Sequence record: MW248466.1
Direction: 5' to 3' (one strand)
Length of the DNA stretch: 64,000 nucleotides
Shown in pieces: positions 3,088-59,195 of this stretch; position 1 is the stretch's first letter, and every line of letters starts with the position of its first letter. The position numbers and the translations under genes were made by a program. A model generated the notes under the pieces. The model was not told the DNA's origin, made no database searches, and saw nothing but the letters and a program-made list of their open reading frames with translations.

Positions 3088-3306
3088 ATGACATTAAAAG
3101 AAAAATTTGAAAGTAAATATAGAAATTTAAATAAAGAACCAGAAATTTTAATTGTAGTTATAAGTTTACCTAGTGGAGCTAAGGAAGTAATTTCCAATAG
3201 CTCCGATCTAGATAATAAAGTACATTATTATCTGGAAACATATGATAAATTTTTTAGACATAATAGAGATCATAATGTCAAAATAATTGATTTTATATTA
3301 GTATAG
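3088..3306 (+). CDS. small hypothetical protein (72 aa) between nrdE and nrdF
   Basis: Likely true start is ATG 3088 after RBS-like AGGGGGT; the track's longer 2965 start overlaps nrdE. Confidence 0.65.
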   Translation: MTLKEKFESKYRNLNKEPEILIVVISLPSGAKEVISNSSDLDNKVHYYLETYDKFFRHNRDHNVKIIDFILV

Positions 3307-3327
3307 AGAATAAGGAGAGTTAATTAG

Positions 3328-4395
3328 ATGACAGTAAAAGGAAGTTTTTTAACAAGTAATAAAGATGGGAACTATATTCCAATGAACTGGAATAATGTCG
3401 ATGATTATGTAGATATCATGACATTTGATACATTGGTATCACAATTCTGGACTTCAACACGTATCCCTGTTTCAAATGATATTAAAGCTTGGAATGGTTT
3501 AGACGATAATACAAGAGATGTAGTTAATAAAGTATTTTCAGAATTAACTATTCTTGATACACTTCAATCACGTGAAGGTGCAGATGCTTTAGTACATCAT
3601 GCTCTTACACCTATGGAAGAAGATGTTTTAAATAATATTAGATTTATGGAAACAATTCATGCTAGATCTTATTCTACTATCTTTACTACATTATGTAGTT
3701 CTAAACAAGTTGACGAGAATTTTAAATGGGCTAGAGAAAATAAATATGTACAAAAAAAGATTAAATTAATCAATGATGCATATCAATCTGATGATATTAT
3801 GAAAGTGCAAGCTGCTTCAGTATTCTTAGAATCATTCTTATTCTATTCAGGTTTCTATACTCCATTAAGATTAAAAGACAGTCTTAAATCAGTACTTGAA
3901 ATTATAAAACTTATTCTTAGAGATGAGTCAATGCATGGTACTTATATTGGATATAAATTTGGAAAACGTTTTGAAAGATTAGAAGAAAATGAACAACAAG
4001 AAATTAAAATGTGGGTTACTTCTTTATTATTTGAATTATATCAAGTAGAATGCGAATTTATTGAAGAAGTATACACTGAAATTGGATGGGCTGAAGATGT
4101 TAAAATCTTTGCTCAATATAACGCAAATAAAGCTTTATCAAATCTTAAATTAGATCCTATTTTTGAGACTACTGAAGAAGATGTAAATCCTATTGTAATG
4201 GCAGGACTGAAAACTTCTACAGGAAACCATGATTTCTTCTCTCAAGAAGGTAATGGTTATTTAATTGGTAAAGCAGAAAATACTAGAGAAGAAGATTATG
4301 ATTCAATTGATGTTAATGAACTTAATAAGAATATCATTGATTCATATAAAGATAAAGCAGACGATAGATTTAGTCATAGTTATTATATAGATTAA
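3328..4395 (+). CDS. nrdF: ribonucleotide reductase class Ib beta subunit
   Basis: FMETIHARSY, LESFLFYSGFY, RDESMHG di-metal ligands; NHDFFSQEGNGY C-terminal motif. Confidence 0.95.
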   Translation: MTVKGSFLTSNKDGNYIPMNWNNVDDYVDIMTFDTLVSQFWTSTRIPVSNDIKAWNGLDDNTRDVVNKVFSELTILDTLQSREGADALVHHALTPMEEDVLNNIRFMETIHARSYSTIFTTLCSSKQVDENFKWARENKYVQKKIKLINDAYQSDDIMKVQAASVFLESFLFYSGFYTPLRLKDSLKSVLEIIKLILRDESMHGTYIGYKFGKRFERLEENEQQEIKMWVTSLLFELYQVECEFIEEVYTEIGWAEDVKIFAQYNANKALSNLKLDPIFETTEEDVNPIVMAGLKTSTGNHDFFSQEGNGYLIGKAENTREEDYDSIDVNELNKNIIDSYKDKADDRFSHSYYID

Positions 4396-5674: not shown

Positions 5675-8600
5675 ATGGCAGACTTTATGTATCTCCATCC
5701 TTCTGTACAAACACAAATCAACTCTTATCAAAATAATTACCCTACAGCTGAAGGTCCTGTAACATTATTTGCTGCAGACACTTTTGAAAAAGGTAAAGAT
5801 GGAGTTATTGATTTTGTTGGTACTGAAGAAGAATTTATTTTTAAATATGGTGAACCAAACTATACGAAATACGGTCAAGCCGCTTATAACGTCATGAACT
5901 GGTTACGTTCTGGTGGACAAGCTTATGTATTACGTGTATTACCTAAAAATGCAACTTACTCTCATGCTATATTAAACGTACAAAGTAGAGTACAAAAAGA
6001 TGGTAAAAAAGTTTTAACAGATGCAAATGAATTAGTTAAAATTGATGACGTTAAAATTCGTCCAACAATCGCATTTGTTAAGAAAAATAATAGAAATATC
6101 GAAGAATTAGTTAACGAAATCACTTTAGATCGTGGTAATGAACAAACAGTAGACGGTTATAATAATAACTTCTTACTTTTAGCTTATCCAAATGGTCGTG
6201 GTGAATCTTATAATGATTTAGGTATTCGTTTAACTTTAAATACTTCATATGACACTAGTGGTCGTACTGAACGTGTTTATAACTTAGAAGTACTTGAATT
6301 TGATGAATTCAGTAACGTTAATGTAATTGATGGACCATTCTTAGTTACATTTGATCCAGATTCAATTTCAGATACTGGTGAATCAATGTTCATTGAGGAA
6401 GTTGTTAATCGTTATTCTAAATACGTTAATATCAAATTTAATTTAGAAAACTTCCAAAATTTAGCTAAAGAAATTAACCCTAATGTACATCCTGCAAGTA
6501 TTGATGTTATCTCTGGTAAATCTAAAGTTAATATTGATGGAACTCCTGAAACTTTCTATTCAGAAAAAACTAAACAATCTGAAGATATTCATATCGCTTT
6601 ACACCGTTACAATAATAAAGGTGTACCAGTAACTATTAGTAGTAAACCTGTATTGAATAAGCCTGATTTTAACGATCCAGTTGAAAATGCATTAATCTCA
6701 TTAGATAATGGTATGCGTGAAAAAACTTTCGTTACAGATTCAGATCGTCTTTCTTACATGAGAGATCAATACAAAACTTTACGTTCTGATAGCTTTACAG
6801 AATTTAAATCATTATTAAATAAAATTATTGTGCCGGCTAATGGTTTATTTGAAGATGATGCAGGTGACTTGCCTAAAACTATTAAAGAAAATTTAGTTTC
6901 TGCAAAATTAACTCAAGAAGATGTAACTGCAGATATCAGTGATGAAGAAGCAGTTGAAGAAGAATTAGCTGGAAAATTCAAACCTTCTGAAATTAATTTT
7001 GGTGGTACACCTGCTGGAGCGGCTGAACGTTTAGTTCAAGATTATAACACTTATTTTGAAGATTCAAATGAAGAAAATCTTTCTGCAGTACTTTCAGGTA
7101 CAGAAGAAATTGGTTCTTTATTATTAAATGAATTTTTAGATAATGGTAATAGACTTAATGCTGCTTACGAATTAGTATATAAATCTAATTCAGGTATTTC
7201 TTCAAATCCTAAATATCAAGCTGATGTTAAAGAATTACGTGACGTATTGTCTCAAAAAGACCAAATCCGTATCTTTGGTATTCAACATAAATCTAATATC
7301 TTAGATATTACAAATGATATTGCTGAATTACGTATTGGTATGAAATCAGTTACTAATTTAGAAGGTATGTCTAAAGTATTAAATGATACTGAAACAGAAT
7401 TACGTTATGTAATTGATAACTTAATGCCAGCAGTTCGTGAAGGACTTCCTGAAGAAGCAGTTAACTTTATTAATACTGTTCCTGATGGTGACGATGAAGA
7501 CACAGAACGTGACTTAGTTTCTCCAGAAGCTATGTTAAACTCATTAGCTGACAAACAAATGTTAGTTGACGATATTAGCTTAGGATTAATGGAAGATAAT
7601 GCGGCTAACCGTGAAGAAGTATTTGTAGCTTGTAATGAAATAGCTAACCAATTAGTTGATTTAATTAACAGAGCTGTTTCAGTAGCTTCTGTATACAAAG
7701 TTGCTCGTGCAGTACGTATTGCAGCTAATACAATCTATTATGATATTTCTATCTTCCGTAAAAATATTGATGAAATGATTCAAACTCGTTCTAACTACAC
7801 AGAAAGAGATATTACATTGAATGCTCATCAAAATATTGAATTAGCTGTTGCTAACTTGAATAAAGCTAACTCTAAATACTTTAATACAAACCTTATTGAT
7901 GTATCTAGTCCAGTTAAATTCTTATTCGGTTCTGATGGCGACTTCTCATATGCTGAAGATATTTCATATAAAGATCGTAAAAATGCTGTTAACCGTGAAT
8001 TAATTAAAGCTTATAAAGGTTTAATTGATGAAGAAATTACTAACACTAAAGCTTTCCCATTTGATGTTGTTCTTGATGCTCGTTATTCTAACGAAGTTAA
8101 GTTCGCTATCTCTGAGTTAGCTAAAAGTGTTCGTAAAGACTTTGTATTCTTAGCTGATACTGTTACTGATCGTTACCCAGTTAGTCCTGAAGATGCAATT
8201 AGATGGAGAAAAGAAGAATTTGCAGTTTCTTCTGAGTATACAGCTATTTACTCTCAAGATTTAACTTACTATGATGAGTACACTGGTAGAGACATTCGTT
8301 TCACACCAACTTATCGTTTAGCTTCAATGATTCCTTATCAAGCTGTTAACTCTGGTTTACACTTCCCAATTGCAGGACCTAGACGTGGATTAGTTGAAGG
8401 ACATAAAGCTTTATCTTGGGCTCCTAATGAACCTTATAAAGAAAAACTTTATACTTCTAAAATTAACTACATTGAAAAAGATATTGATAGAACTAAATTT
8501 GGTGCACAAATGACTTCTATTAAATCTGATGGTCCTTTATCTAACTTGAACAACATCTTTACATTAAATCAAATTAAACGTGATGCAGAAACTCTTGTTT

Positions 8601-43060: not shown

Positions 43061-44294
43061 ATGTCTAATCAAGATAATAAATATGAACGTAAAAGAGCTA
43101 TAACAGGTTATTTAGAGAATTTAATCAAATTAATTAAAATAAGAAAACCTGATATTGATAATGAAAAATTAATTAATGCTTGTAGAGAGTATATTAAAAA
43201 ACATGTAGATCCAGCTTTAATAGAAATATCTGGACAAAAAATGAATGTGGATACAACCTTAAGACAAATTATTGATAATAATTTAATTGTAACTGGGTCT
43301 GGTTCTATTTATCAACCTCAATCACAAAGAAAAAATTTAAATGCAGATATGTTAAAAGACTTTATAGATTCTCGTAAAGTAGCTAAGCACAATATGTTTA
43401 TTTATAAAGGTAAAGATGATGTTTTACATGATAAATATATGAATGAACAAAAAACAATTAAGATCTTAGCTAATAGTTATTACGGTGCTATGATTCAGAA
43501 GAATAGTACATTCTATGATTCTAATTCAGGTCCAGCAACTACTTATAGTGGTGTTGATATTGTAACTACTTCAGCAATAGCTTTAGAAAGATTTATTGGT
43601 GGTAAAATCTTCTTTATGAATATTGCTGAAATATATCATTATATATTAAGAATAATTAATGAGAAATATGAAGATCATGATATTAAGATAAAATCAATTC
43701 CGACTGATAGAAAAATTCTAGAAGATTTAGTTTCTAATATTGAAGAAGATTATAGTGAAGAAGAGTTTCTTAAATTAGAAGATGTATTTAGTAAATTAAG
43801 TCAAGAAGATAAAAATAAAGTATATTTCAAAAATAATTTATCTGGATTAATTGATCATACCGATATATTTGAGAATAAAATTAGCAAAATGACTGGTAGA
43901 GAAGATTTCTTAGATCCAAACGAACCACCTGAAGATTTGATTCCATTATTAGATGAATTATTTGAGATATTAAAAGATTGGGTTATATATAATTATCAAG
44001 ATTACAATAGAATGTATAGAATGAATTACAAGAAACGTAGAAGTGTTCTCACAATTGACACAGATTCAAATTTCGTTCACTTAGATCCATTATATGAAAA
44101 AATGAAATCATTAAAACCTGAAGATTTCCCTATTGCAGAAAATGGTTTAGAAGATAAATTAGAACAACGTGTAGGTAATATATCTATTATTAACTATCAA
44201 ATAACTAAATTATTAGAATTATCTTACTATAGATTCTGTAAAGATGTAGGATTAGAAGAAGAACATTTAGGTTTAATATCAATGAAAAATGAGT
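43061..44294 (+). CDS. family B DNA polymerase (polymerase domain), exon 1
   Basis: KILANSYYGA (motif B), TIDTDSNFV (motif C), MKNE at the exon end; spliced to 44481-45181 gives 644 aa. Confidence 0.85.
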
Positions 44295-44480
44295 ATTATC
44301 AAGTTAATGCTCCGTTGTATAGTGATATACAGAAAGACAAATTTATTAATTGCTGGGATAATTCATTAATTAAATCAGCATCTTAAGAAATTAAGTTCAA
44401 CGACTAAATATAAATATACTTAATATAAAGTATAAGATATAGTCTAATCTTTATTAAATTAATAAAGACTAATAAAAATG
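44295..44480 (+). ncRNA. ORF-less group I intron (186 nt) in DNA polymerase
   Basis: P1 GAGU|AUUA/UAAUGCUC with U44294-G44309 wobble; AAUUGCUGGG (P4), AAUCAGCA, GUUCAACGACUA (P7), AAGAUAUAGUC; ends in G44480; splicing restores MKNEFLLDKQLTTDKKKTYA. Confidence 0.9.
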
Positions 44481-45181
44481 TTTTACTTGATAAACAATTA
44501 ACAACTGATAAAAAGAAAACTTATGCATCATCAGTAATTCAACAAGAAGGTAATTTAGTTCAACCACCAGATTTAGATGTTAAAGGTATGGCTATCAGAA
44601 AAGTAAATACTAATAAACGTATTAGAGAATTATTTACTGAAATATTACAAAAAGATATTTTAGAAAATAAAACTGGTGTAGATCGTATTAAGATAATACG
44701 TAAATTTAAAGATATTGAAGAAATGATTAAGAAATCATTAGATAATGGAGAAATTGAATTCTTAAAACCATTTAAGGCTAATAATGCTGAGGTATATAAA
44801 GATCCTTACTCTCAAATGGCATATAGAGCTGCTTTAGCATGGAATATAATGTACCCAGAAAAAGAAATAGCACTACCTGCTAAGATATTAGCAGTTAAAT
44901 TAAATATTAGTACATTTGGAGATATTAAAAATAAGATAACTGATGAAGATACTTTAAATAGATTTAGAGAAGTATTTAAGAATGAAAGTTTAGTTAAAAA
45001 TGGTTTAAATGTAATTGCAGTTGAAGGTAATACAATTCCTGAAGAGTTTAGACCTTTTATTGACTATGATAGTATGATTGAAGATCATATTAAACCAGGT
45101 AAAGATATTATTGAATCTATAGGAGTTAGAGTATTGGAATCTTCAAATAGCTCATTTGTATCTAATATGATTAAATTCTAA
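44481..45181 (+). CDS. family B DNA polymerase, exon 2
   Basis: KKKTYA...EG...LDVKGM polB thumb-region motifs lie upstream of the track's ATG 44588 and are in frame after splicing. Confidence 0.85.
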
Positions 45182-48054: not shown

Positions 48055-49216
48055 ATGAAAATAGATATGATCAACGTTGATCAAATTATTACAGCTTATG
48101 AAGCTAAAGAAGTTACAAACCCTATTTTCTTTGATTCAGGAACTTTACCTAAAGAAGACGGTTTATTCTCATATGAAATATTTGGTTTAATAGGTACTGA
48201 TGAAAGAAAGAATAATGTAGGTTGGATTAATCTAGGCGGTAAATACCTAAATCCTGTAGCTTATAAATCTATGAAAGAATTAGATAAAAATGTCGATTTA
48301 TGTATTCAGGGATCTGATTACTTTAAAATTGAAAAAGGGCAATTAGTTCCAGATGAAAATGGAGAAACTGGGTTAAATTTCTTATACGATAATTATGAAA
48401 ATCTTAAATTTAGAAAAAATGATTCTCGTATCCGAAATGAAAAAATTGATATGCTTAAAAATACTCCTAAAGATAGAATATTTACAGATAAATGGCCTGT
48501 AATACCTGCTTTCTATCGTGACTTTAACCCTAATGAAACTTCAGGAGAAATTCAGGATACTGAAGAAATAAATGATATGTATGCAAGTATCTTAAGATCT
48601 GTAGATTCAATTAGTTTTAATTCATTTGAATTTGTAGCTAATACGACTAAATATAATATTCAAAATAAATTATTTGAAATATATGTTAAATTAACTTCAG
48701 GTGAACTATCAGGTAAAACTGGTATGATGCAAAGAAATATTTTAGGTAAAACAGTAGATAATAGTACTCGTTCAGTTATTTCTTCACCTAAAATTAATTC
48801 AAATAAATGGAATGAAATGCAAATTGAATTCGGTCAATTAGGTGTTCCGTTAACTCAATTAATAACATTATTCTTACCTTTCTTTAGCAAATATATTATA
48901 GACTTTATTGAAATTCATAAAGATGCTTTCCAAACTGCTACTGGAACTGATGAAAAAGAATTATCGCTAGAAGAAGTATATGAACAATTTGATGATAAAT
49001 CTATTAAGAATATGTTAGAATTCTTTATTAAAGATCCTAATGAAAGATTTAGTCCTATATATGTAAATGACAGACAAGGTAAACGTCATAAAGTTAAATT
49101 ATTTGAAAATACTTTAGGCAGAACTTTTACTGTAATTGATTTACTTTATATAGCTGCTACAGAGATATGTGAAGATAAGCATGTAGTTTATTCGAGGTAC
49201 CCGATTGAAAATTTCC
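48055..49216 (+). CDS. rpoC: RNA polymerase beta' N-terminal subunit, exon 1
   Basis: DGLFSYEIFG, GWINL, PVIPAFYR, GKTGMMQRNILGKTVDNSTRSVIS, RYP; four exons join to 503 aa. Confidence 0.9.
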
Positions 49217-50692
49217 GTGCGAAGTGTTTCCCTATAAGTGCTTAAAGCATGAAATGGGATAGTTTTTATTTTATATAAAAATGAAACTTTAATAGAGATG
49301 ACTGGTAACGGTCACATAGACACCTACATGCATTGTGAGTAATTACTTTGTATGAAGCTAGGTAATATGGGTCATATATGGTGACGAATAGGAACTTCTT
49401 ATGATGTCCTTTAAAATGAAGAGAGTAGTTTGGAATGGTGAAATCTTCTTTAAGTGTTTTAAAGGGTAGAGGGAGCACCTAAGTATGATATACTATCTAT
49501 TAAGGAACGCTTGAGATCCAATAATTGTTTTAATATTGGAAGTCAGCAGACCATAGTAGCGTTGAAGCTTTGTAATAAAAGTGGAGCGAAGGGTCATAGT
49601 CAATAAAAGAAAACTTTTTTAATAGAAAACTTTTTTAATGAACAATAAGCTATTAAGATATAAAGGAATGATAGCTTATGAATATTAAAAAAATGAATCA
49701 AGATCAAAAAAATGAATGGTTTCAAAATAAATTAGATGAAAAATATGATTCTGATAATAGATTATTATTATTAAGTGATTATAAAACTACTCATGAAAAA
49801 GTTAAAATAAAGTGTTTAAAATGTGGTCATGAAGATATTAGGAGACCTGCAGTCTTAATTCAAGGAAATAGATGTTCTAGTTGTGGAAATAGAAAAAGAT
49901 ATACAACTAAAACACTACAAGAAAGATTTGATGAAGTTTATCCTAATGAATATGAAATTTTAGAAGAATATAATGGTCATATAAGAGATAAAATGAGAAT
50001 AAAACATATTCCTTGTGGGGAAATTCTTCATAAATCTCCCAATTCTATTTTAAATACTGGAAGAAAATGTCTAAAATGTTCTAAACTCAAAAAGAAATCT
50101 ATACAGGAAACACAAAATTTAATTGATAGTAAATTTAAGGAAAGAGAATTTACAATTGTTTCTGAAGAATATATTAATAAAGATACTCCATTAAATATTA
50201 AACATGAAAAATGTGGAAATATAATAAATATTTCATATACAAATATACGAAATGATGTTTTTTATTGTAAATATTGTAATAGAAGTAATGGAGAACTATT
50301 GGTAGCTAATATATTAGATGAGTTAGGCATTGATTATGAGATAGAATATAATCACGAAAAAGTTAAAAGTTTAAAAAATAGATATATGCCTTTTGATTTC
50401 TTCTTTAAAATTAATGGTAAAGAATGTGCAATTGAGTATGATGGAAGACAACATTTTGAAAAAGATTACATTGGTTTTAAAGATGAAAAATCATTTGAAG
50501 AAAGAGTCAAAAAAGATTTACTTAAAAATAAACTTTGTGAAGAAAATAATATTAATCTATTGAGAATCCGTTTTGATCAAAATAAAACTATTAGAAAAGA
50601 TATTTTTGAATTTATTGATGGAACGCTGTATGCGATGAAAGTCGCACGTACAGTGTGAAGCGGGGGAAAATCGTAAGATTACCTATCGCTAT
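49217..50692 (+). mobile_element. group II intron (1476 nt, no RT) in RNAP beta' gene
   Basis: 5' GUGCGA at 49217; 34-nt domain V ACGCUGUAUGCGAU-GAAA-GUCGCACGUACAGUGU (50623-50656); domain VI with bulged A50685; 3' ...AU; removal restores RYPIENFLNVAPAKIKILT. Confidence 0.9.
49678..50658 (+). CDS. intron-encoded putative homing endonuclease (Zn-ribbon repeats + Vsr-like/EDxHD-type nuclease)
   Basis: Three repeated CxxCG/HxxCG...CxxC units; C-terminal GE..VANIL...PFDFF...AIEYDGRQHF...DLLKN...NINLLRI; RBS AAAGGA. Confidence 0.8.
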   Translation: MNIKKMNQDQKNEWFQNKLDEKYDSDNRLLLLSDYKTTHEKVKIKCLKCGHEDIRRPAVLIQGNRCSSCGNRKRYTTKTLQERFDEVYPNEYEILEEYNGHIRDKMRIKHIPCGEILHKSPNSILNTGRKCLKCSKLKKKSIQETQNLIDSKFKEREFTIVSEEYINKDTPLNIKHEKCGNIINISYTNIRNDVFYCKYCNRSNGELLVANILDELGIDYEIEYNHEKVKSLKNRYMPFDFFFKINGKECAIEYDGRQHFEKDYIGFKDEKSFEERVKKDLLKNKLCEENNINLLRIRFDQNKTIRKDIFEFIDGTLYAMKVARTV

Positions 50693-50883
50693 TAAATGTC
50701 GCACCTGCTAAAATTAAAATACTAACTACCGTTGATACAATTCCAGAAATTACTTTAGATGATATTGTACTTAAAGATTATCCTAAAGTTGTTCATGAAT
50801 ATCCTGTTGATGAAGATGTATTTATAGATACTGCCATTATACACAATTCATATGCTGGAGCACTCGGTGCAGATTTTGACGGT
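50693..50883 (+). CDS. rpoC: RNAP beta' exon 2
   Basis: LNVAPAKIKILT...HNSYAGALGADFDG. Confidence 0.9.
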
Positions 50884-51041
50884 AAGTTATATTGCCGTAT
50901 TTAAATATTATTAATTGCTGGGAGAGATTATCATCTTAATCAGCATCACTACAAATAGTGTTCAACGACTAAATATAATATGCTTATTTAAAGTAAAGAT
51001 ATAGTCTGATCTATATTATCTTAATATAGATAACATAAATG
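50884..51041 (+). ncRNA. ORF-less group I intron (158 nt) inside the catalytic DFDG|D motif
   Basis: P1 ACGGU|AA/UUGCCGU with U-G wobble; AAUUGCUGGG, AAUCAGCA, UUCAACGACUA, AAGAUAUAGUC; terminal G51041. Confidence 0.9.
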
Positions 51042-51167
51042 GATATGATCTCTATAAGATCTCTTTGGACAGTAGAGGCTAATAAAGAAGCTAATAAACT
51101 TCTTAATAAGAAAACCAACTATCTAAACTACACTGGTAATTCAGTACGTAATTTGGGTAATGAGAGT
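51042..51167 (+). CDS. rpoC: RNAP beta' exon 3
   Basis: DMISIRSLWTVEANKEA...GNSVRNLGNES completes GADFDGDM. Confidence 0.9.
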
Positions 51168-51307
51168 AACATGCTTGTATGCTCTCAATAAATAATATTA
51201 ATTGCTGGAAAAATCTAATTAGATCAATCAGCATCAACTTCATATAAGTTGTTCAACGACTAAATATATTACTAAGAAGATATAGTCTAATTATCATAAA
51301 TAATATG
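51168..51307 (+). ncRNA. ORF-less group I intron (140 nt)
   Basis: P1 UGAGAGU|A/UGCUCUCA with U-G wobble; AAUUGCUGG, AAUCAGCA, UUCAACGACUA, AAGAUAUAGUC; P9 AUUAU/AUAAU; terminal G51307. Confidence 0.85.
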
Positions 51308-51340
51308 GTACAAGCTTTATACTCTTTAACTAAAGAATAA
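51308..51340 (+). CDS. rpoC: RNAP beta' exon 4
   Basis: VQALYSLTKE*; spliced GNESVQALYSLT resembles bacterial SQDVVLGLYYMT. Confidence 0.8.
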   Translation, partial: VQALYSLTKE

Positions 51341-51429: not shown

Positions 51430-51485
51430 AATTATGAAGTTGATAATTATTAATCAACTAATATAATAAAAAAGGATGGATTTAA

Positions 51486-51785
51486 ATGAATACAATCAAA
51501 ATAATGGATACAGAAATTCTACAGGAAGCTGTAGAAGGAAAAGAGAATAACGGTGGAGGTTACGAACATACTCGTACCGTTTTCGAATTCCAAGGAAAAC
51601 AAGGAGTTTTCGAAGACACTTCTTGTGGTGATTTCGGTAGCAGATTCTTCATGGAATGGGATGGAAAAATGACTATGTGGGGAAGTATGTTTGATAGTGA
51701 AGTCGAATACAGTGAATTCGATGAACAAGAACAATCAGAACTTCTAAACCATTTTAGAGTTCCTGTTTTTGAAGAAACAATCTAG
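51486..51785 (+). CDS. acidic hypothetical protein (99 aa), monocistronic
   Basis: Own promoter motif, RBS AAGGA, and terminator TCTAGGACATT/AATGTCCTAGA at 51781-51802. Confidence 0.75.
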   Translation: MNTIKIMDTEILQEAVEGKENNGGGYEHTRTVFEFQGKQGVFEDTSCGDFGSRFFMEWDGKMTMWGSMFDSEVEYSEFDEQEQSELLNHFRVPVFEETI

Positions 51786-57741: not shown

Positions 57742-58344
57742 ATGGAAATGAATTTAGATTCTTATGAATATTATTATAATGATGATGAAAAAGTTTTAGC
57801 TAAAACACCAGTTGATATATCAAAAGAAACTACTAATAAAAAGATTTCAATTGAATACTATAAAAATATATTTAAAAAAGATTTTTATCTGTTTCGTAAA
57901 CAAATTATTGGAACTCATGTAATATTCGACAGTGATTCTTTGCATAAAATAATTAATAAGAGTGATGGAACATCTGTACCAGGATTTAATTTATTATTAG
58001 ATTTTGAAGTTCTTAGTGTTTCAAGAGAAATTATCTTGAAACTAAGTTTTTCAATTAATGATTCTAAATTCTTTAAAACATTTGATAAAAGTAAAGATAT
58101 TTTAGAATTTTCAAAAATGAGTTCTATATATTACGATCATGTAGAGGATAACCTTGAAGATAAAATGGCATATTTATTAGCTAAACTATTCTTTGATATG
58201 CATGTGAATGAGAATGAAGATATCGAAATTTATTTAGAGGATAAATTTAATGAAATGTTAGATATATCTAAACCGTATAAATACTTTAGATTGTTAAATG
58301 AAAAAGAAGTTAAAAAACACTTAACAAGAGAAGGATTTAAATAA
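57742..58344 (+). CDS. tag-family protein
   Basis: Ends LLNEKEVKKHLTREGFK. Confidence 0.8.
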   Translation: MEMNLDSYEYYYNDDEKVLAKTPVDISKETTNKKISIEYYKNIFKKDFYLFRKQIIGTHVIFDSDSLHKIINKSDGTSVPGFNLLLDFEVLSVSREIILKLSFSINDSKFFKTFDKSKDILEFSKMSSIYYDHVEDNLEDKMAYLLAKLFFDMHVNENEDIEIYLEDKFNEMLDISKPYKYFRLLNEKEVKKHLTREGFK

Positions 58345-58415
58345 ACATTTTTAATGAATTTAATTAACTTTCTTTTATATTAATAAATATAATGAAAGAG
58401 AGTTGAATAAGATAA

Positions 58416-59195
58416 ATGTCTGAAACTAATGAAATTGATTTAATATCACAAATCAATGATATGATGGATGAGTATAAAATGTTAGTTAAATTTAAAGATA
58501 AAATGGAAAATAAAGAAATTCAATTAGAAAATCGTATACAGGATTTAACTAAGAATCTGAAATATCCTAAACATACATTCGTATCTAATATGGAAGCTAA
58601 TATTATCAGTGTAGAAAAAGAAATTAAAGATACTATTATGCAAATGAAAAATGTTAAAAAAGATATTATTGACTTAACTATGAAAGCTCAGAAAATGGCT
58701 GAAGATGATGAATCTGAAGATAATTACAAAACTCTTGCTAAAAATGTACTTAATGAGCTTAATAATATGTCTAATAAAGATATTCTAAACAGTATGATGG
58801 AACCTGAAGAAGTAAATGATGAAGATACTGATTTTAGTGAAGAATTGGATGCGAAATTATCACAATTAGATGAAGAAGAGAAATCTATTAATAAAGAAGT
58901 AGATCAAAAAGAAGAATTAAGCGAAGAAATTAATGAACTAGACCAACAAGATTTATCTTCTATATTAAAAGTCTATAAAGGCACATTACAATTCTTTGTT
59001 ATAGGAGATTCTCCTGAAGAATATGAATTAGTAGTTGCTGATATGGATATGAATATTATTGAAGAAGATGAAATGAAAGATGAATACCCAGAGTTATTTA
59101 CTATGACTAGAGATCTATTATTTGAAGATGTTGAAGGTAATGATGAAATAGTTACAGATGATTTTGGAAATATTTATCAAAAAGCAGAATTTTAA
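58416..59195 (+). CDS. acidic coiled-coil hypothetical protein
   Basis: N-terminal heptads, very D/E-rich C-half; lacks the tag. Confidence 0.7.
   Translation: MSETNEIDLISQINDMMDEYKMLVKFKDKMENKEIQLENRIQDLTKNLKYPKHTFVSNMEANIISVEKEIKDTIMQMKNVKKDIIDLTMKAQKMAEDDESEDNYKTLAKNVLNELNNMSNKDILNSMMEPEEVNDEDTDFSEELDAKLSQLDEEEKSINKEVDQKEELSEEINELDQQDLSSILKVYKGTLQFFVIGDSPEEYELVVADMDMNIIEEDEMKDEYPELFTMTRDLLFEDVEGNDEIVTDDFGNIYQKAEF

Follow-up and report, generated by a model that had tools for sequence, protein, structure and literature searches.

The beta'-N gene and its third intron

The DNA analyzed here is a stretch of 64,000 nucleotides (the window) from record MW248466.1, the genome of the Staphylococcus jumbo phage MarsHill; window coordinates equal the record coordinates minus 62000. 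The gene that begins at position 48055 encodes the N-terminal part of the virion RNA polymerase (RNAP) beta' subunit (beta'-N). Three introns were found in this gene: a group II intron, a 158-nt group I intron and, in front of a short last exon, a 140-nt element at positions 51168-51307. Judged by its sequence, this third element is most probably a genuine miniature group I intron that lacks an open reading frame (ORF) and would be removed by the standard group I pathway.

The homologue in UFV_DC4 (locus L002) is uninterrupted, and its comparison with MarsHill by BLAST and direct inspection gave four colinear blocks. The UFV_DC4 allele lacks exactly the 140 nt: the alignment stops at the site and restarts at the 3' exon. 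Madawaska, which according to its describers is approximately 92% identical to MarsHill genome-wide, also possesses an empty site, and the exon context there is identical (AATGAGAGT/GTACAAGC). When a U at position -1 and a terminal G were required, the placement at 51168-51307 (140 nt) was unique. The exact absence of the 140 nt from the two intronless alleles leaves the reading frame intact. The spliced MarsHill ORF comprises 503 codons and a stop codon, and it ends in NLGNESVQALYSLTKE as does the intronless UFV_DC4 protein, in which the C-terminus reads GNES/VQALYSLTKE. An earlier reading made from the letters of the window (the sequence-only reading) had placed a 140-nt group I intron at 51168-51307 and had given GNES/VQAL as the junction. 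Both proposals agree with the intronless alleles, and the intron boundaries were exact to the base.

No homing endonuclease is encoded in the 140-nt intron, since its length leaves no room for an ORF. Close relatives vary in having or lacking the intron, which implies that it is mobile or was lost by another route.

Architecture of the 140-nt intron

The elements of the intron are collected in Table 1. At the 5' splice site, U51167 is wobble-paired to G51181 (U•G) within P1. In the internal guide sequence, the P10 strand UUGUAU adjoins the P1 strand on its 5' side and pairs at six of six positions with the beginning of the 3' exon (GUACAA). Across 18 introns of the family, the mean P10 pairing was 4.0 of six positions, as compared with 2.49 for random 6-mers. 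The remaining segments are J3/4 (UAAU), J4/5 (AAAA), L5 (AAUU), J5/4 (CAA) and J6/7 (UUCA), and the G-C pair of P7 is presumed to be the guanosine-binding site. Like P7 and J8/7, J4/5 and J6/7 are invariant or nearly so within the family. The GC content of the intron is 24%. The unconstrained minimum-free-energy (MFE) fold recovered P1, P4/P5, P6, P7 and P9 (-29.3 kcal/mol, z = -2.98). Between MarsHill and LY01, the intron differs at five positions, all five of which are unpaired.

The intron retains a catalytic core that consists of the P3/P7 pseudoknot, P4-P5-P6, J4/5, J6/7, J8/7 and P9; the catalytic role of the individual bases is presumed from their positions in this core. All of the helices named in the sequence-only reading (P1 with a U-G pair, P3, P4, P5, P6, P7 and P9) were located at the coordinates that we checked, and P10 can be added to them. 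The same reading had described the intron as having no P2 and nearly no P8. P2 is absent, with just 6 nt between the guide sequence and P3. For P8, an anchor-based parse of 51 cores in total showed that the segment from the P3 3' strand to J8/7 is 5-6 nt long in four P8-less cores of Staphylococcus phages versus at least 13 nt in the 47 other cores. The vestige CUAAG of the 140-nt intron aligns with the two ends of the P8 hairpin of a sibling intron.

Table 1. Features of the MarsHill beta'-N gene, its 140-nt intron and the intron of the DNA polymerase gene (window coordinates)
Feature	Position	Strand	Basis or remark
186-nt group I intron, DNA polymerase gene	44295-44480	+	family model R1, 57.7 bits; gap versus intronless UFV_DC4; GUGA-loop P2, full P8
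Exon 1	48055-49216	+	colinear block versus intronless UFV_DC4 allele
Group II intron	49217-50692	+	GUGCG...CUAU ends; Rfam Intron_gpII match
Exon 2	50693-50883	+	colinear block versus UFV_DC4
158-nt group I sibling intron	50884-51041	+	splits catalytic DFDG/D motif; 4-bp P8 kept
Exon 3 (DMISIR...NLGNES)	51042-51167	+	colinear block versus UFV_DC4
P1, 5'-exon strand GAGAGU	51162-51167	+	six contiguous pairs with GCUCUC 51181-51186
140-nt ORF-less group I intron, third intron of beta'-N gene	51168-51307	+	empty sites, U at -1, terminal G, R1 match
Internal guide sequence	51175-51186	+	P10 strand UUGUAU 51175-51180, then P1 strand GCUCUC 51181-51186
In-frame UAA within intron	51189-51191	+	just past guide sequence; stop of the GenBank coding sequence
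P3, 5' strand UAAUAU	51193-51198	+	pairs with 51266-51271
P4-P5 arm	51203-51233	+	P4 UGCUGG 51203-51208/UCAGCA 51228-51233; P5 AUCU 51213-51216/AGAU 51221-51224
P6 hairpin CAACUU/AAGUUG, loop CAUAU	51235-51251	+	family covariation; MFE fold
P7, 5' strand A[C]GACU	51256-51261	+	bulged C; pairs with AGUCU 51284-51288; followed by J7/3 AAAU
P3, 3' strand AUAUUA	51266-51271	+	closes P3/P7 pseudoknot
P8 vestige CUAAG	51272-51276	+	at most one C-G pair
J8/7 AAGAUAU	51277-51283	+	nearly invariant in family
P9 AUUAU/AUAAU, loop CAUAA, then AUG and omega-G	51290-51307	+	omega-G is G51307
Last exon (VQALYSLTKE and stop)	51308-51340	+	colinear with intronless alleles; first six bases form P10

Family model and covariation

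Since the Rfam model Intron_gpI (RF00028) gave no match on the mini-introns of the Staphylococcus phages, an independent covariance model of the family, R1, was adopted. R1 was built from 33 intron sequences of IMG/VR jumbo phages only, and zero Staphylococcus-phage sequences were included. It was searched against both strands of the whole MarsHill genome (267 kb) and three related loci, 286 kb together, with a threshold of E <= 1. The 140-nt intron scored 65.2 bits (E ~5e-8; match on 51193-51287). In total 18 matches were obtained, and exactly ten of them lie in MarsHill, all on the coding strand. These ten sites are all in genes known to be split: those for DNA polymerase, beta'-N (two sites), TerL (terL, three sites), GyrB (gyrB) and the non-virion RNAP beta subunit (three sites).

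Covariation was analyzed in a model-based alignment of 150 matches, 75 of them distinct, and the tested structure included the P3 pseudoknot. In this structure 95.2% of cells were paired versus 28-44% when the partners were slid, and none of 500 shuffles reached the observed value (75 distinct sequences). In P3, P6 and P8, changes on both sides were observed at six of six pairs each. P3 is absent from the R1 structure; thus, its covariation is no product of the fit to the model. The fifth pair of P4 changes from G-C to A-U in 13 of the 75 sequences, and it is the one covarying pair of P4, while P7 is invariant throughout. In the anchor-based parse, P3 was fully complementary in 12 of 13 distinct variants. 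The two strands of P5 are swapped in a sibling intron (AGAU/AUCU). The P7 and J8/7 strings were also found in many jumbo-phage contigs.

Points against the assignment and the end of the gene

Four observations weigh against a genuine group I intron at this site. First, P8 is usually part of the conserved core and is missing here, where the segment between the P3 3' strand and J8/7 is CUAAG alone. We treat P8 as a usual but not defining feature of group I introns, because all of the catalytic and splice-site features are present and P8-less relatives recur. Second, P3 consists of six A-U pairs and neither GNRA loops nor their receptors are evident, so that autonomous folding may be weak. Third, the search with Intron_gpI that the sequence-only reading had proposed gave zero matches at E <= 10 in the window region, the other MarsHill pieces and the loci L003-L005, L016 and L020. 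RF00028 misses the mini-introns of both the Staphylococcus phages and the gut phages and matches relatives on contig L071 with the same P7 and J8/7 strings (155-262 nt). We read the miss as a gap in the sensitivity of the model and not as a structural failure. The standard group I model misses the whole family, and similar introns are probably unseen in many phage genomes.

Contig L071 (IMG/VR contig 3300045993_001216, 255 kb) carries a stretch of 12.6 kb with eight RF00028 matches above the gathering score and three weaker ones. Two of the weaker matches measure 155 nt (6545-6699, 45.6 bits) and 159 nt (3175-3333, 26.6 bits).

The fourth observation is that the GenBank annotators ended the gene at the in-frame stop codon of the intron. 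The coding sequence CPT_MarsHill_113 is joined from three pieces, the last of which ends at record position 113191 (window 51191). The 140-nt intron is unannotated, and the protein QQM18075.1 terminates inside it as ...GNESNMLVCSQ. If this annotation were correct, the 140 nt would stay in the RNA and the 33 nt downstream would be non-coding; in its favor, the coding sequence past the intron amounts to just ten codons. We consider this explanation scarcely credible. In six phages, the 33 nt keep the frame and the same stop codon and differ only by synonymous changes. The UFV_DC4-type intronless protein aligns with bacterial beta' chains into the last exon, up to residue 501-503 of 503 (residues ~514-517 of the chain). 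We take these chain residues to belong to the conserved segment after the NADFDGD motif. Because the last exon is conserved in the six phages and the beta' alignment extends into it, the truncated GenBank product is disfavored. The existence of two empty-site alleles and the presence of all the group I signatures, including P10 to the last exon, also speak against an unspliced end. The ten seed introns that were read by eye all have a stop codon in frame shortly past the guide sequence.

Excision of the intron predicts a protein with the C-terminus GNESVQALYSLTK and the peptide NLGNESVQALYSLTK. On the sequence comparison, the true C-terminus of QQM18075.1 is very probably GNESVQALYSLTKE, and the C-terminus of the MarsHill virion RNAP beta'-N in GenBank would need correction.

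Predicted splicing reaction and possible requirement for help

The elements described above would allow the following reaction. The guide sequence would form P1, with its U•G pair, with the last six bases of the exon, and P10 with the opening six bases of the last exon. Free guanosine held by the G-C pair of P7 would attack after U51167, and the 3'-OH so released on the exon would in turn attack after the terminal G51307. By these two steps ...GNES would be ligated to VQALYSLTKE, restoring the conserved beta' segment. Splicing in vivo is very likely, given a viable phage, an essential gene and the metatranscriptome support for the related introns of gut phages. The RNA itself is presumably the catalyst. 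The all-A-U P3 and the missing periphery probably make the intron reliant on general RNA chaperones, Mg2+ or a low growth temperature.

Group I chemistry may also occur in vivo with the stripped RNA depending on a phage or host protein, such as a maturase-like or CYT-18-like cofactor, that holds P3-P7 and P4-P6 together. P2, P8 and GNRA-receptor pairs are all absent, P3 is built from A-U pairs only and the GC content is low, as would be expected of an RNA in need of such a partner. In most group I introns, the active fold is stabilized by peripheral RNA elements or recruited proteins (PMC2813881), and fungal introns of 56-81 nt were spliced in vitro only with long flanking rRNA (PMC3160393). 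Growth of these phages is restricted to approximately 30 °C and fails at 37 °C. However, no candidate protein was identified, the catalytic junctions are fully canonical, and the family occurs across unrelated hosts (Staphylococcus phages, and gut phages with predicted Bacteroides hosts), which argues against a host-specific factor. Moreover, S6 is also temperature-sensitive, though its record (LC680885) is without these beta' introns. In our estimate, dependence on a dedicated cofactor is less likely than not. The S6 comparison likewise weakens the idea that the growth failure at 37 °C is due to unstable mini-ribozymes.

We tentatively suggest, with somewhat less than even confidence, that the 140-nt intron and a 127-nt sibling in terL are ribozymes that self-splice independently of protein. 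Among natural group I introns with a complete catalytic center, they would then rank as the smallest to do so. If this is the case, P2, P8 or P9 would be individually dispensable and the minimal natural core would be redefined. Introns of 127-140 nt could then also serve as compact parts for RNA circularization by permuted introns and for ribozyme engineering.

Trimmed introns in MarsHill and related phages

The 140-nt intron is real and very small, but others like it exist, and MarsHill itself has a smaller one. The ten mini-introns of the phage measure 127, 140, 155, 157, 158, 159, 162, 174, 177 and 186 nt. Their sizes were set from the intronless UFV_DC4 alleles and the rules of U at -1 and omega-G; the ends of the short last exon of beta'-N and of a 14-nt micro-exon in terL were placed by hand and confirmed by translation. 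An automated delimitation that used U at -1, omega-G, P1, P10 and restoration of the frame recovered only two of 13 known boundaries (MH_s2 and terL T1), and was therefore not used for a size census of the IMG/VR introns.

The terL gene possesses three introns in tandem (127, 157 and 159 nt; L138 8470-8996, record 58269-58795), and the spacers between them are the 14-nt micro-exon (CGTGGTTCTACTGT) and a 70-nt exon. The first of them, at record 58269-58395, retains P8 and lacks P9, and its P6 has just 3 bp. In the MarsHill genome paper, introns were predicted by protein alignment only, and the reconstruction of TerL failed. When the three mini-introns are removed, an intact TerL of 677 aa is obtained, which matches the intronless UFV_DC4 protein over the region compared. 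Thus, a gene that was beyond the reconstruction of the original authors becomes an intact ORF. The excision of the 186-nt intron of the DNA polymerase gene fuses the ORFs 43061-44386 and 44588-45181 into a polymerase of 645 aa.

The P8-less core was found at beta' site 3 (MarsHill and LY01), at beta' site 2 (Machias and PB50) and in gyrB (MarsHill and Madawaska). Therefore, the trimmed core has persisted or spread at three sites in essential genes. The P8-less cores of the Staphylococcus phages have a common P3 (UAAUAU/AUAUUA). P8-less cores with other P3s were detected in 109 stretches of gut jumbo-phage contigs from several lineages, with at least 13 further distinct cores among them; one such intron, delimited by hand, is approximately 167 nt long and keeps P2 and a long P9. 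At the site of the 140-nt intron, Machias and PB50 carry an ortholog of 142 nt in which a P8 of 5 bp is kept and P5 is lost. P2, P5, P8 and P9 are trimmed independently in different members of the family, which has relatives in other Staphylococcus jumbo phages and in jumbo phages of the human gut. This natural deletion series (127-186 nt) in essential genes offers test cases for ribozymes well below the classical minimal size.

These relatives also bear on a further suggestion of the sequence-only reading, namely help from the neighboring introns. The mini-intron would then be completed in cis or in trans, with, for example, the 158-nt sibling supplying P8 or a scaffold. The three introns of beta'-N do lie within 2.1 kb, and the near-identical P4, P7 and J8/7 strands of the siblings could in principle cross-pair. 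In gyrB of MarsHill and Madawaska, however, the same P8-less core is the sole intron annotated or detected (two-piece joins of the coding sequences; one R1 match, MarsHill), and because it stands alone in its gene, help from neighbors is unlikely. The Machias/PB50 ortholog has its own P8 and has lost P5 instead, so that there is no consistent missing part to supply, and, apart from the shared core strands, the introns showed no complementarity to one another. We regard such completion as very improbable.

We also considered whether the loss of P8 is a consequence of the loss of P2 through the L2-P8 contact. The data are only partly consistent with this idea: the three introns with a GUGA-capped P2 are those with the longest P8, but the gyrB intron has a small P2 and no P8. 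The proposal that neighboring introns have distinct P3s to avoid cross-pairing was rejected, since two LY01 introns 9 nt apart share UAUUAU/AUAAUA.

Comparison with known introns

The group I intron of the Azoarcus pre-tRNA-Ile (subgroup IC3, ~205 nt) is compact, has no large peripheral domains and is usually cited as the smallest well-studied self-splicer. Rich in G+C and very stable, it possesses P2, P8, P9 and two GNRA-receptor contacts (L2-P8 and L9-P5). By comparison, the MarsHill intron has 65 nt fewer, a GC content of 24% and neither P2, P8 nor GNRA loops. The Tetrahymena large-subunit (LSU) intron, of 413 nt, has P2/P2.1, P5abc, a long P8 and P9.1/9.2. Its core (IC1) presumably carries matching strings (..ACxGACU AAAU..P3'..P8..AAGAUAUAGUC), which we take as a lead.

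The sequence-only reading had placed the intron possibly below the usual natural minimum. This stands in so far as 140 nt is less than the length of the Azoarcus intron and than the mean of approximately 206 nt given for 2513 group I introns of jumbo phages (PMC12880540). It does not stand as a record, since the terL sibling is shorter still and degenerate putative group I introns of 56-81 nt have been published from the nuclear rDNA of fungi (Phialophora and lichen fungi) (PMC3160393). Like the MarsHill intron, these are natural derivatives of group I introns and much shorter than 200 nt; for the fungal ones, a dependence on flanking RNA or other help was discussed (PMC3160393). They differ in being described as degenerate and as needing approximately 300 nt of flanking rRNA for splicing in vitro (PMC3160393), whereas the MarsHill intron keeps P3-P7, J8/7 and P9 intact.

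The closest counterparts are the introns of the gut 'Jug' phages (PMC12880540) and their IMG/VR relatives. They belong to the same R1 family, with the same order of elements and matching or near-matching P4, P7 and J8/7. As in MarsHill, they are multi-copy, lack ORFs, lie in RNAP, terL and polymerase genes, and include P8-less variants. For these introns, splicing was supported by metatranscriptomes in 37 of 76 predicted cases (PMC12880540). The 'Jug' introns differ in their mean length (~206 nt versus 140 and 127 nt in MarsHill) and in belonging to another host clade and phage lineage; the MarsHill lineage is AR9-like.

In the literature on the smallest or P8-less group I introns, nothing relevant was found beyond the degenerate fungal introns. 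The MarsHill element is a group I intron of 140 nt without P2 and P8, one of a natural trimmed series of 127-186 nt. The series is of value for testing how small the natural group I core can be; in addition, two annotations can be corrected, and the standard RNA model is seen to overlook such introns.

Further introns and intron sites

The group II intron of beta'-N gave an Rfam Intron_gpII match of 57.1 bits on 50621-50692 (domains V/VI) and weaker matches for domains 1-4. Its homing-endonuclease ORF (49678-50658) encodes 326 aa of the zinc-ribbon/endonuclease type with no reverse transcriptase. As described in the text of a paper on phage group II introns, such introns with CapR/Vsr-like endonucleases form a class, as in MarsHill beta'-N (PMC12350094). 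The text treats, as here, the same host gene and several self-splicing introns per gene; it deals with group II introns and endonucleases, and miniature ORF-less group I introns, their size and the loss of P8 are not discussed in it.

Several other sites of the family were noted. BLAST gave 20-27 matches per genome in LY01, Machias, AH12 and PB50. In beta'-N of LY01 (L003 2820-3166), mini-introns of 181 and 157 nt flank a 9-nt micro-exon (TTTGACGGT) within the catalytic ADFDG codons. No fewer than four mini group I introns interrupt this gene, and a further one is suggested by the sequence upstream of the 181-nt intron. At the DFDG/D site of Machias and PB50 (L004 2849-2998, and L146), the P8-less intron is preceded by a C (GAUGGC directly before the intron), across from which the guide sequence has an A. 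The 5' splice site would here carry a C•A where a U•G is near-universal. At the DFDG/D site of Madawaska (L145 1705-3176), a large, different group I intron occurs where MarsHill has the 158-nt mini-intron. An endonuclease ORF (1771-2907) lies within its P1 loop, and the guide sequence is the same (AUAUUGCCGU).

The introns at L005 2974-3128, L003 2070-2242 and 2820-3000, and L004 2464-2646 (gyrB and two beta' sites) have the exon sequence CCGAU upstream and the guide GUCGC. The sharing of CCGAU/GUCGC would be expected from a choice of site by guide pairing (reverse splicing) or from the exchange of modules between introns.

Larger group I-like cores were observed in MarsHill at record 51468-51552 and 155967-156093 on the minus strand and at 239679-239795 on the plus strand (L138, L139 and L141), and Rfam matched none of them. 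In these three cores, the 85-127 nt between P7 and P7' resemble P7.1/P7.2. The introns that hold them contain endonucleases and interrupt the gene for the prohead protease and two genes for virion RNAP beta.

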